DNA of 63,001 nt, the filler included, from Salisapilia sapeloensis CBS 127946 (taxonomy: Eukaryota; Protista; Oomycota), in the NCBI GenBank assembly GCA_023334545.1. It is 12 parts of 12 records of this genome, joined end to end, with 100 filler letters (N's around TTAATTAATTAA, not from the genome) between each part and the next. Parts side by side here need not be neighbours in the genome. Positions count along the whole stretch, not along the records: positions 31,461 to 34,786 come from JAADVB010000765.1; 11 more parts are not named here. One strand, written 5' to 3'. Positions 31,361-37,200 of this stretch are shown piece by piece. The notes under the pieces were generated by a model. The model had not been told where the DNA came from. It made no database searches and saw only the letters and a list, made by a program, of their open reading frames with translations. Position 1 is the stretch's first letter; each line of letters opens with the position of its first letter. The position numbers were made by a program, and so were the translations under genes.

Positions 31361-31538
31361 NNNNNNNNNNNNNNNNNNNNNNNNNNNNNNNNNNNNNNNN
31401 NNNNTTAATTAATTAANNNNNNNNNNNNNNNNNNNNNNNNNNNNNNNNNNNNNNNNNNNNACTTGATTTTCTTTTATTATGTCGAACAGCATACATCTTC
31501 ACTTCCAGTTTTGCTTCGAATCGATGGCCCCAACTCCA

Positions 31539-34200
31539 ATGAAGTTTACAACTACGCAAATCGCTCTATCTCTCTATTAATGTTGTCTAGTTGGCAAGCT
31601 TTACAACCTGCAGCAATTGATCCTTATGTCCGCATGCTTGTAAAAGAAGGGAATCGACGATGAAAAGTTGTCAAAGATGCCTTTTCCATACGACACGGAG
31701 AAAATGTAATTGAATCCATACACGTTTTAGAAGACCACATCACTCATGTCACATGCATGATAGTGACCTGAGCGGAAATAAGATCAAAACGCTCAACGCA
31801 ACCCGATTCAAGCACACTAAGATTCTGTACAGAAACTTGAAACCATAAGTGGTAACCGAGCGTCTTCTTACATACGAGTGTAGTGAGATGCGTGGAAATC
31901 CTATCAAAAAATCTCCGGAGTGTTTCCAAACCTAGAAGAGCTGTACACTTAATGCGATACAGTAAGATGAGTATTATACTTACCAAAGTTTCATCTGAGC
32001 AGGTACATGAACGGCACTTCCTTCAAGGTCCTAAATGCATCCACATTCCCCAAGCTTCACAAATTGTACTTCTTCCTGCCAACACTGCGGCCTAGGTGGT
32101 TAGTCTCAACCTTCTAACGCATACGAACTAGGCAAAGCTATCAAGGCTCGTTGGAGAATATGTTTGGCGAATGGGAACACCTCGAGAGCCTGTAAGCACT
32201 TGACAATGGTACCTTGGCGATATTCATATCATTCCCCTGGCTGATATAGGAATGTGCGATGGAACCAAATTTCCCTGCTCAAGGCGCATATGCCAAAGCT
32301 AACTCATGCGTAAGATGCTCGCGTCAGATTTTTGGTTCGTATGTCTGACACCTCAAGTGTAAAGTAGCAATTTCAAAGGCAATCAGCTCACCGGCTTTGA
32401 CTGCTCCAGGACGAAGCTAAAGACTTTGTAGTGCGCATTCCGTATAGCGTTTCATACATTCTTAGATCTCGCACGTGCGGCGTACAGGGGCATTTCGAGC
32501 AATAATTTAACAGAAGAGAGTTCGCAAGGAGACAAGTGTAAGCATCTTGAAGAAGTGTACGTATCTTTTGGGTTATTTAGAAAGCACGCGACTGATCTAT
32601 TTAAGAAGAGATTTGAGTTGGAACAGCATCAAGGTTCTTGATTACTCGCAATGCAATGCTCTCCACTCGGTTGAGAAGATGTACGTAGCAAAGTTTATAC
32701 ATACAACGTACGATGATCTTGTACTGAACGCATGACAGCATCGCAGATCACTCTAACATCGAGAAATGGGGTGGCAAGTGGCTCAATTTAAAGAGCGTGT
32801 ACGTGTCTCTTGGCCATCAATATAGTACTGTATGCTAATTTACTTCCGATCGTATACAGATCCATGGAGCATAACGTTTTGTCCAAGGTCAATCCAAACA
32901 TCCCGGTCATCGAGAAAATGTACGCCCTTGGCTTTTAGCCGTACAAAAGAATTTGGGGAGAAAAATACTTATGGAAACTTCGCACGCTACAGGCAACTAC
33001 AGCACAACAAACTAGTCAAGCAAAGATTCCGCCCAAAGCCAAAGCGGGATTTCGGTACTGAAACACCAAACGCTGATGGACTCCATCTATTGTTGCTGCC
33101 AAAGTTAAAACACATATAAGTCTCACATCCTCCTCCGCGCCTCAGATAGTTCACGTCTACTCTGTAGCGATTTATCCCACAACAGAGACACGGATGGCAG
33201 CGGAAAAGAGCTCAAGGGGGAAGCTCGACTGGAATTTAACGAGACCCTTTGTCTGGAGTATCTGTATGCAACAAGCTGTTCTCTTACAGCTTAAAACGTA
33301 TGTACTAGTCGACGTTGTGGGCACCTGAATAACGATGTAGAGGGTAGCGTGCTTGACGATGCTAACTTTTTGGCAATGACCAGCCTGAGAGGCAAAAGGA
33401 GCGCAATGTAAATTTCGACAGTACTTGAGGCTCATGAGCTGGCAGATCGCATCGTACTAACTTAATTGATGACACTAGAATCGATCCAGGTGGGAAGGAC
33501 ATTCGAAAAGGTGACTATAAGAATGCTTTGTACATTGGTGGTGAGATTGTAACCGAGAATCGCAAGCGTGCTTTCCTCGGTGCCCGCTGCTGACAACGCC
33601 AACTTTTTTGATCTCATGCACGAGAAACTGCCAATCGAACGCACTGATAACAGTCAACGAGAAGCGGTGTGGTAGCACACGGGTCATTTGCTTTGCTTCT
33701 GTCGCTTTCCTGTTATTTTATTCGTGCATTCCAAAGGATGCAGGCAGCGCACAAACTGAAAATAAAAGTCTGTCGATGAATACGCGTCAACCTGAAAAGT
33801 CGACGACATGCATGCGTTCTGGGCAAATAATAGAACGCAATTGCTGTCCGCTTTCATGCCATTGCTATGGTTGGTGACGTGCTATAAAGCGAATGACCGA
33901 AGCTTCAGATGTATGTGATACTGACGACTTTGCTGAAGGCTACCAGAGCCAGTCCATTTAGTCGATCATAGCACTCCATCAGCAATTTGGCTCAACCTTC
34001 ACTGCTTGCTAAGATCCACATTCACAAAGGTACTGGATGCTAAGAAAGAGAATGATATGGATGGAAAGATGAAGGTTCTAGGACCACTGGGAGTTGCCAT
34101 GCTCTCGTTGAAGCTACTCTCAATATTTCGACAATAGCTAAGAAACTTGCCCAGTGGATCTTGTTAGCGATCCGCTTTTACTAGCAAACCAATCGTTTTG
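31539..34200 (+). pseudogene. Multi-exon LRR receptor-like gene (one LRR per exon), with inactivating lesions
   Basis: LRR exons at 31764-31826, 31884-31942, 32003-32065, 32132-32191, 32250-32309, 32368-32427, 32488-32556, 32609-32680, 32739-32798, 32860-32919, 32993-33115, 33168-33263 (e.g. DLSGNKIKTL, NVRWNQISLL, NFKGNQLTGF, DLSWNSIKVL, DLSHN), separated by phase-2 introns of 52-73 nt. Also a frameshifted signal-peptide-like start at 31539, a CPHAC cap and a TM-like segment near 33683-33730. Lesions: 1-nt loss in exon 2; ATAAGT donor at 33116. Outer boundaries approximate. Confidence 0.8.
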
Positions 34201-37200
34201 GTAGTTTCCCCTTGATGCACAGTACAAAGCCACAACATGTATCTTTTCGAGGTGTCAGTCTTGACGTAGACTACTGCCAGCAGTACTGACTTAAATCTCG
34301 TGAAGCTAACAGTAAAAGCTTTCTATCTGTCATCTAGTGTTTTCTACCATCCTCGTGCTTCAATTCCACACATTGATGCGCTGATACTGTGAACCCTCTT
34401 TGCGTCTGGTTTCCCACCTATTCTTCAACGCAGCGTCCACAAAGTCAGGACAGTCAGCGATGCGTATTTGAAACCTTCTTCAATGGACGAGCATCTGTAG
34501 AGTTTGATGGGCACTAAAGCATGATTTGGATGACTGCTACCGAAGCTACTACAAGGCAGATTGAAAGTCTTATAACTTTTTATCAATTCACACCTCAATC
34601 GACTCTCATGTCATTGGTTTCGTTCGTTCCTATGTCTCATCCATGTACTAACGTTATCAAGACACATGGCAGATACTAGTTACATAGACCTGTTCAAGAT
34701 AGACTTGAGCTGTTCGGCCCTTTCGGAGTGGGTGGTATCGCCGTTTGTACCCATACGGGCAGCTGGTGAATGGAATGGCGTACCCTNNNNNNNNNNNNNN
34801 NNNNNNNNNNNNNNNNNNNNNNNNNNNNNNTTAATTAATTAANNNNNNNNNNNNNNNNNNNNNNNNNNNNNNNNNNNNNNNNNNNNAGTTAAATAATTTT
34901 TCTCTTTTCTTTTTCCTAGGCTACCATTCCTTTCTACGAGCGATATCACTTCAAACCTTCTCCAGGAAAGCATTTGATTTGGACCTGTATACCTCTAAAT
35001 CCGTACGTCATTGTGTCACTGGAAGCTCAGGGAAAAGCAATGATTGTGATGCGTTGGCTGAAGTGAATGAGGAGGATAGAGCTAAGAACGTGATACTCAA
35101 TTCAAGTCACTTGCCACTTTCAACGGGTGCTCAGGCTACCCGAAGTGCAACTACCTTCGCAAACTAGACACATTTTAATTGCAAAAGTATGCTTCAGAAA
35201 GCTAAGTCATGAAGTCGAGACATTATAAGCGGAAGTGATACCGTTAAAATCTTCGTGTTGTATTTGAAGATCATCAACCATGCTCATGACTCTACGTAAT
35301 TTATGGTCAAAACTGGCTTAGAACTGATGAAATTATGCCGATATCGAACACATTTACAAAATACGAGAATAAGCAAGCTAGGTGTATTTAAAGTTGAAAT
35401 GAAACGTGCCTGCTAGTATTAAAGCATGAGTTGCCCTTGGTTGAACTCGTAGCAAGCGCAGAATTGCTAACGCTGGTACCTTGCAATAATCGTTTGGTGA
35501 TGCAAGTGAGCAAGAAAAATCTGGATACGATGCCGATCATTATCCAGAAAAGCACCCAAAGAAGTTGAGAGCTTTCTTCAGAATTGGTAGTATCGGAGAT
35601 TACGAACGATGCAAGTGGAATGACGAATGCCTTAGCCATCGCATTTCATGCCAGTGATCTTGATTTGGGAGTAAGAAACTTTAGGAGCTATTCTTTGCTT
35701 GAAAAAAATGAAGAATGGATATTTTCGCGGCCCTTCTTTGCGGTCCATGAAGCTGGATTTTCTGTCAGGTGCTCCGATAAATGACCTGTCGGATAGACAT
35801 TTCGGAAATGTATCTTCGCTACCCGCCACATGATGCGAAAATCCTATGACAGTTGATGGAGAATTGTATTCAGTATGTAGTGATTCTATGAAGACCTCGT
35901 GCATGATCTTATGCTCAATAAATGGTATATCTTATTAGTGTAGATATGCTTAAAAATGCGAGTAACCAACCAACTTTATGTGCATGTCAATATCGAACGT
36001 GGTGGCAGATAATGGGGAGGCGATAGAAATGTATCTAACGTAAAAGCAGTTTCGGTTCGTAAGAGTAGATCAAATCTTGGGTCGTCTTTATATTGTTTCA
36101 TTGTGCAGCGTCAGTACTGAACTGAAAGCTATTGAGCGATCATATTCTTGATGCTATAGGTTAAATCTGCTACTGCTCATACAAAGATACAAAACTTAGC
36201 TTCCATGTACGACATTAAGTTGATATGCTACTCAGGTAGATGGAATTTGAGCATTTTGCTTAACTTGACATATTTGTCTTTATACGGTTTGTTTATAATA
36301 ATCATTACCAGTGTGATTGGGTGTAACTCGGGAAACGAAGCATGTTACATTTGTTGTCTTCATACAGGTGAGAGCCAGGGTAGGAAATTCTCTACCACAA
36401 GTTTTCAGAAGATTATTGCAGCTAATCTAATGTTTGTATTTCCATCACATGAAAGACGCCCGTACTTAAATGTAGGTAATACCGTACCTTTTCACAATGG
36501 TATGTGACTGCACCTTGCATATTCGCGGATAAAACGGAAAGACAACACTGAAGTCCACAATCTGGTTACGGTCTTTGTACTTAAAGAGACTTTGTGTGCT
36601 TATAGCTAGTGTTTGGAAACTTTATCTGCTATTGGAAACCAGTTTGATTGCATCATATGCAATGCGACTTTTTAAAGGATAATTCATTCGTTAGAGTACT
36701 TGCGTTTCCTTCATGATTGCAAGGCTTTCAATATACTATACGGAAGACATTCTGCTTGTCCTTCCACTTATCGAAGAAGTGGCTGGGAACGCCAGTAGCA
36801 TGGCATGTTAAATTCGGTCCGTACAGATGTTTGTGATCTAGCTTACCTTCACTCGTGGTACAGCTATCTCAATCGGATACGCTTTAACTTAAAATGTGCG
36901 AGACATCATCTATCATCTCAATTCAGCTTAGTAGGCATGCTCAGTCGCGGGCTATGTTGGTTAAAAGCTCCCTGTCATTTTGAGTAGATATATGATCGGT
37001 ATAGAAGTAGACAAAGTTCTTGACGGATTACTTAGCATAAAACAACCAATTGTAATTAAAGCAGTGTCATGTATGTGCATTTAGAGAAGTAGGTTTCCAA
37101 AGCGGTAATGAAGTGAAATATACAACTATTATGACGTATTGTACAACACATTGGTAAAGCGAAGACGAGCAGTCGCTTAATTATCCGTTACGGAGCATCC

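Follow-up and report, generated by a model that had tools for sequence, protein, structure and literature searches.

Can a piece of DNA without a single open reading frame (ORF) longer than 95 aa on either strand carry a well-formed gene, and which type of protein would such a gene encode? The question is raised by positions 31461–34786 of a window of 63,001 nt (the whole stretch of DNA under study, made of 12 joined parts of the Salisapilia sapeloensis CBS 127946 assembly, GCA_023334545.1), and the analysis was confined to this piece (JAADVB010000765.1; 3326 nt, 44% GC, no N). An earlier note had described a region without informative ORFs, in agreement with the ORF limit given above, and had read it as a hidden leucine-rich repeat (LRR) gene, rich in introns, in which every repeat occupies a symmetric phase-2 exon of its own, a reading that the exon map and the LRR profile matches described below support. 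In our assessment the piece probably holds one nearly complete, intron-dense eukaryotic gene on the + strand with a soluble LRR-only product, derived from an old exon duplication and spliced constitutively.

Exon map and repeat identity

Recomputing the boundaries gave 12 LRR exons identical in length to those mapped before (Table 1), and the phase-2 introns of 52–73 nt were present where they had been placed, measuring, in order, 57, 60, 66, 58, 58, 60, 52, 58, 61, 73 and 52 nt. Each LRR exon starts one base before the xLxxN strand, and the introns split the first Leu codon of LxLxxN, which is the Leu-position codon to which the earlier note had assigned them. The chain was extended to a + strand model that opens with the ATG at 31677, closes with the TGA at 33593 and comprises 15 exons, 14 introns and about 362 codons within 1.92 kb. 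Exons 0, 13 and 14 of this model were added on the basis of splice-site logic only, and its two ends are accordingly proposed as the likely ones. The peptide of exon 0 is MPFPYDTEK plus a split Ile, from which a 58-nt phase-2 intron leads into LRR exon 1; upstream of the ATG there is a TAA in frame and no usable phase-2 acceptor. Additional 5' exons may exist, given that the piece is only 3.3 kb long. Between the TAA and the ATG, and in frame with the latter, positions 31645–31676 encode GIDDEKLSK, a stretch that faintly resembles an LRR unit and may represent a decayed extra repeat.

Table 1. Exons of the gene model, with positions counted along the window.
Feature	Position	Strand	Length (nt)	Remarks
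Exon 0, proposed first coding exon	31677..31705	+	29	ATG, 8 codons and 2 nt of a split codon; donor gtaatt
LRR exon 1	31764..31826	+	63	DLSGNKIKTLNATRFKHTKI
LRR exon 2	31884..31942	+	59	Broken frame
LRR exon 3	32003..32065	+	63	
LRR exon 4	32132..32191	+	60	
LRR exon 5	32250..32309	+	60	
LRR exon 6	32368..32427	+	60	Tandem acceptor also at 32365
LRR exon 7	32488..32556	+	69	
LRR exon 8	32609..32680	+	72	75 nt with tandem acceptor 32606
LRR exon 9	32739..32798	+	60	
LRR exon 10	32860..32919	+	60	
LRR exon 11, irregular	32993..33115	+	123	LxLxxNxL start, then an insertion of roughly 20 aa
LRR exon 12	33168..33263	+	96	DLSHN...; tandem donor 33258, 6 nt upstream
Exon 13, proposed	33309..33407	+	99	Non-LRR tail; phase 2 on both sides; no homology support
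Exon 14, proposed last exon	33479..33593	+	115	TGA at 33591–33593; no homology support

All 14 introns of the model are in phase 2, are 45–73 nt long and have a GC content of 42%. Their acceptors are YAG throughout (14/14), and donors of the GTA type are found at 10 of the 11 introns among the 12 LRR exons and at 12 of the 14 introns of the whole model. The eleventh donor, which follows the 123-nt exon 11, is a non-canonical ATaagt at 33116. For exons 11 and 12 there is a canonical in-frame alternative, in which 32993–33091 (donor gttgct) is joined to 33150–33257; the version of the earlier note retains the repeat register, and its donor deviates from the GTAAGT type at the first base only. 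At the first Leu of LxLxxN, each of the 14 split codons specifies an aliphatic residue (I, L, V, M or A), the 11 introns between LRR exons giving, in order, L, L, L, L, A, L, V, I, V, M and I, and the junction codons have the form XT+N, with one GC+N. Some splice sites occur as frame-keeping tandems, namely the NAGNAG acceptors 32606/32609 of exon 8 and 32365/32368 of exon 6 and the paired donors 33258/33264, 6 nt apart, after exon 12; the choice between the members of such a tandem would alter the protein by one or two residues only.

To characterize the repeats, the peptides of 11 exons were aligned exon by exon, and the resulting 22-position profile was searched against all PDB sequences. 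With this profile 66 PDB sequences were matched at E<=10, and among the 60 listed nearly all are named LRR proteins, including repebodies, variable lymphocyte receptors (VLRs), internalins, RSU1, LGR4, GPIb-alpha and ANP32. The best match was LRRTM (E 3.3e-6), and in the best matches nine consecutive repeats align to the exon profile. The LRR core is also visible in the units themselves: among the 12 units, position 3 is hydrophobic in 10, position 6 is Asn in 9 and position 8 is hydrophobic in 11. Taken together, these PDB matches and this residue pattern establish the array as LRR, as the earlier note had expected of its exon peptides. The repeats follow the pattern LxLxxNxLxxL...F..L and are, as had been claimed, short and mutually divergent, most being 20–21 aa long with a mean column identity of 23% in the alignment of the 11 exon peptides. 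When single units were held out and compared with the profile of the others, they scored between -2.5 and 10.4 bits, against 3–5.7 bits for the best background match. A Pfam search with eight single exon peptides gave no LRR match, since peptides of this size are too short to be informative, and a scan of the piece with an HMM of the unit found no extra LRR units in introns, flanks or the antisense strand.

Type of protein and extent of the gene

The product would comprise about 12 short divergent repeats, each in its own exon with a phase-2 intron splitting the first Leu codon of LxLxxN, one irregular looped repeat and a non-repeat tail of roughly 70 aa. None of the exons contains an 11-residue window above a Kyte-Doolittle mean of 0.93 and, in the absence of a hydrophobic stretch in any exon, no signal peptide and no transmembrane segment or other membrane anchor is present in the model according to these windows. 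Pfam searches found no protein kinase domain on the 3.3-kb piece (flanking ORFs; TGA at 33593), no Roc-COR domain in any ORF of the piece and nothing above sub-threshold noise in ten flanking or antisense ORFs; Rfam gave no match on the whole piece. The term "receptor-like" used in the earlier note is therefore not supported: the piece offers neither a signal peptide nor a transmembrane stretch, a kinase or a Roc-COR domain, there being no hydrophobic stretch and no domain downstream of the stop. A soluble scaffold protein composed of LRRs only is the simplest reading; it would fold into a curved solenoid, would bind another protein and would probably be cytosolic.

With respect to the tail, separate PDB searches with exon 13 and exon 14 gave no match, which leaves the suggestion of a degenerate LRR cap in exon 14 unsupported. 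The 1.2 kb downstream of the model (33594–34786) contain no ORF above 89 aa, no Pfam or Rfam match, no LRR unit and no above-chance exon chain. A possible polyadenylation signal is the AATAAA hexamer at 33761–33766, which follows the proposed TGA at a distance of 168 nt.

That the locus is instead part of a larger multi-domain gene, or a decayed copy of one (an LRR kinase, an LRR-ROCO gene or a gene for a secreted LRR protein), is unlikely, yet it is an alternative with some points in its favour. The signal peptide or the enzymatic domain would then lie off the 3.3-kb piece or would have decayed, and the ATG and TGA of the model would not be the true ends. Such a fragment would be consistent with the faintly LRR-like in-frame stretch before the ATG (GIDDEKLSKM...), with the support of exons 13 and 14 by splice logic only, with the two lesions that the copy already carries and with the published record for oomycetes, in which nearly all LRR receptors are LRR kinases (PMC2939053). 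However, the TAA upstream is in frame and not accompanied by a phase-2 acceptor, and the 1.2 kb downstream provide no ORF, Pfam match or above-chance exon chain from which a further domain could be assembled. Moreover, the published oomycete LRR kinases have only about two LRRs, whereas the present array has about 12 (PMC2939053). A nearly complete gene for a soluble LRR-only protein is the reading that we retain.

Age of the exon array and comparison with other LRR exon systems

The LRR exons are all flanked by phase-2 introns on both sides and, apart from the broken 59-nt exon 2, their lengths are multiples of 3. Since the exons are symmetric and in phase 2, the loss, gain or exchange of an exon would preserve the frame, a point on which the earlier note was right (the broken exon aside), and because the junction codons are of the form XT+N (one GC+N), any exon join would retain an aliphatic residue. 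The combinatorial or shuffling system that the note had derived from this layout did not find support, as the units show no nucleotide similarity to each other and no paralogue or relative was found. Pairwise local alignment gave 12.84 for the exons compared with 12.24+-0.30 in shuffles, and 11.54 for the introns compared with 11.35+-0.21 in shuffles; TRF and a repeat finder revealed nothing relevant in the way of tandem or dispersed repeats among the units, and the nucleotide comparison of exons and introns gave no sign of a recent duplication or exchange at the locus. Given that the similarity of exons and introns does not go beyond that of the shuffled controls, the array is judged to be old. 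It would most likely have arisen when an exon with one repeat was duplicated in tandem long ago, the copies then diverging over a long time, and its splicing would be ordinary and constitutive.

Some short motifs recur at the exon ends. The signature ..GT/GTACGT (the slash marks the exon end) is found at exons 7 (32549–32562) and 9 (32791–32804), GAGAARAT/GTACG is found at exons 8 (32673–32686) and 10 (32912–32925), with a similar form at exon 0 (31698–31711), and the first few bases of introns 7 and 9 are also alike according to the repeat finder. These alternating signatures may be the trace of an old two-unit super-repeat.

Searches for relatives used short queries and would, by a rough estimate, detect only sequences with roughly >=65% identity; because of the short queries, their empty outcome is weak evidence. 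A word search with the 95-aa ORF containing exon 11 found no relative, HMMER with exon 11 against 1.84 billion representatives matched only a low-complexity scallop protein, which was judged spurious and rejected as a relative, the ESM Atlas gave no usable match for exons 14 and 11, and related-locus scans of metagenome and prokaryote genome contigs revealed no relative.

Arrays with one LRR per exon have been described in several lineages, and the intron position and phase of the present gene are the same as in rice LRR kinases, in which the introns of the LRR region are in phase 2, split the first Leu codon of xxLxLxx and separate single repeats exactly (PMC3050792). The plant units are 72 nt (24 aa) long, whereas those found here are mostly 60–63 nt (20–21 aa), and the plant proteins have a signal peptide, a transmembrane segment and a kinase, none of which is present on this piece (PMC3050792). 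Brown-algal LRR-ROCO genes (Ectocarpus, Saccharina) likewise carry one LRR per phase-2 symmetric exon, a feature common to the present gene, and their layout has been proposed to be competent for shuffling; in contrast to the unequal units observed here, which lack nucleotide similarity, their exons are uniformly 72 bp long and closely related, and they are associated with non-coding LRR copies in introns and a downstream Roc-COR GTPase, neither of which was found (PMC3341825, PMC11378527). In Tetrahymena, LRR exons form tandem arrays with introns almost only in phase 2, and the junction codon is shared between adjacent exons as in the present gene; the ciliate exons are exactly 90 bp long and occur by the thousand, with young copies retaining nucleotide identity (PMC6564038), whereas here a single locus with divergent 60–72-nt exons is observed. 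For the vertebrate glycoprotein-hormone (gonadotropin) receptors, an LRR region of similar-sized exons with introns that are all in phase 2 is described (as cited in PMC11378527), and the all-phase-2 layout described there matches that of the present gene; the LRRs of these receptors form ectodomains of seven-transmembrane receptors, whereas the present gene has no membrane part. In oomycetes, the LRR receptors published are LRR kinases whose repeats number only about two (PMC2939053), compared with about 12 in the present array. The one-LRR-per-exon, phase-2 layout has thus been published before in plants, brown algae, ciliates and vertebrates; the present gene stands out by its 60–63-nt unit and, provided that the source has been attributed correctly, by its intron density. 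The locus adds a case of this recurrent layout, with unusually short units of 20–21 aa, and in an oomycete, should the source truly be one, 14 introns within 1.9 kb would be out of the ordinary. Introns this short and of moderate GC would speak against a land plant, a ciliate or a brown alga as the source.

In view of these precedents, a system of combinatorial recognition, in which a receptor would be diversified by skipping, duplicating or swapping its symmetric LRR exons through alternative splicing or exon shuffling, as proposed for the brown-algal ROCO genes, has to be weighed as well; we consider it improbable. All exons are flanked by phase-2 introns and have lengths that are multiples of 3 (bar the broken one), the XT+N junction codons keep a hydrophobic residue at any join, frame-keeping tandem acceptors and donors are present, and brown algae and Tetrahymena provide precedents. 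The same exon symmetry, however, is found in constitutively spliced LRR genes, for example the rice LRR kinases, and at this locus neither exons nor introns are near-identical to one another, a tandem-repeat signal is lacking, the exons range from 60 to 123 nt in length, the searches revealed no paralogue and there is no receptor feature. We give equally little credence to the idea that the locus is part of a mini-exon LRR gene family restricted to its lineage, in an oomycete that otherwise has few introns, and that the symmetric 60–63-nt exons of this family undergo reshuffling or alternative splicing by which a binding surface is varied; if true, plants, brown algae and ciliates would be joined by this family as a fourth independent instance, and the family's 60–63-nt exons would be the shortest one-LRR exons described. 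On present evidence the locus is an ordinary LRR scaffold gene or pseudogene rather than a new recognition system.

Chance expectation and state of the copy

The length of the exon chain was compared with chance expectation using strict rules, that is, GT-AG introns of 45–75 nt in phase 2 and open exons of 57–126 nt with a length that is a multiple of 3. On the + strand 11 exons could be chained in this way, while 300 dinucleotide-preserving shuffles mostly gave chains of 2–4 exons and never more than 9. The codon-position composition is coding-like, with GC3 (0.56) above GC1 (0.49) and GC2 (0.36) in the inner codons, compared with a GC content of 0.42 in the introns and 0.39 in the 5' flank. 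A gene model on the minus strand (33818–32752, 8 segments) was rejected; because of its GTG-type non-consensus donors and peptides without a motif, this chain is probably an antisense artefact of the coding sequence on the + strand. That no gene exists at all and that open segments and GT/AG dinucleotides fell into this pattern by chance is hardly credible, since the weak leave-one-out similarity among the units and the 8-segment chain that the minus strand yields under permissive phase-2 rules, without a motif and with GTG-type donors, are set against a + chain exceeding every one of the 300 shuffles, GTA donors (12/14), YAG acceptors (14/14) and aliphatic junction residues (14/14), codon-position periodicity and LRR-specific PDB matches. 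The locus illustrates that a region without usable ORFs can conceal a well-formed gene, which ORF-based gene callers or those trained on intron-poor genomes would miss.

To the earlier note this copy had looked inactivated, which may be so: a frame break and an AT donor are present, and both could be sequencing errors. In exon 2 the frame breaks at or beside a run of six A (31906–31911), the frame anchored at the 5' side runs into a TAG at 31932–31934, and each half of the exon is still LRR-like in its own frame. Because the lesions are limited to this homopolymer-side frame break and the AT donor, the copy may be a pseudogene of recent origin, or else the gene is intact and the sequence of its short, poor contig contains errors. 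The remainder of the model is intact, with 13 of the 14 donors, all 14 acceptors and no further stop.
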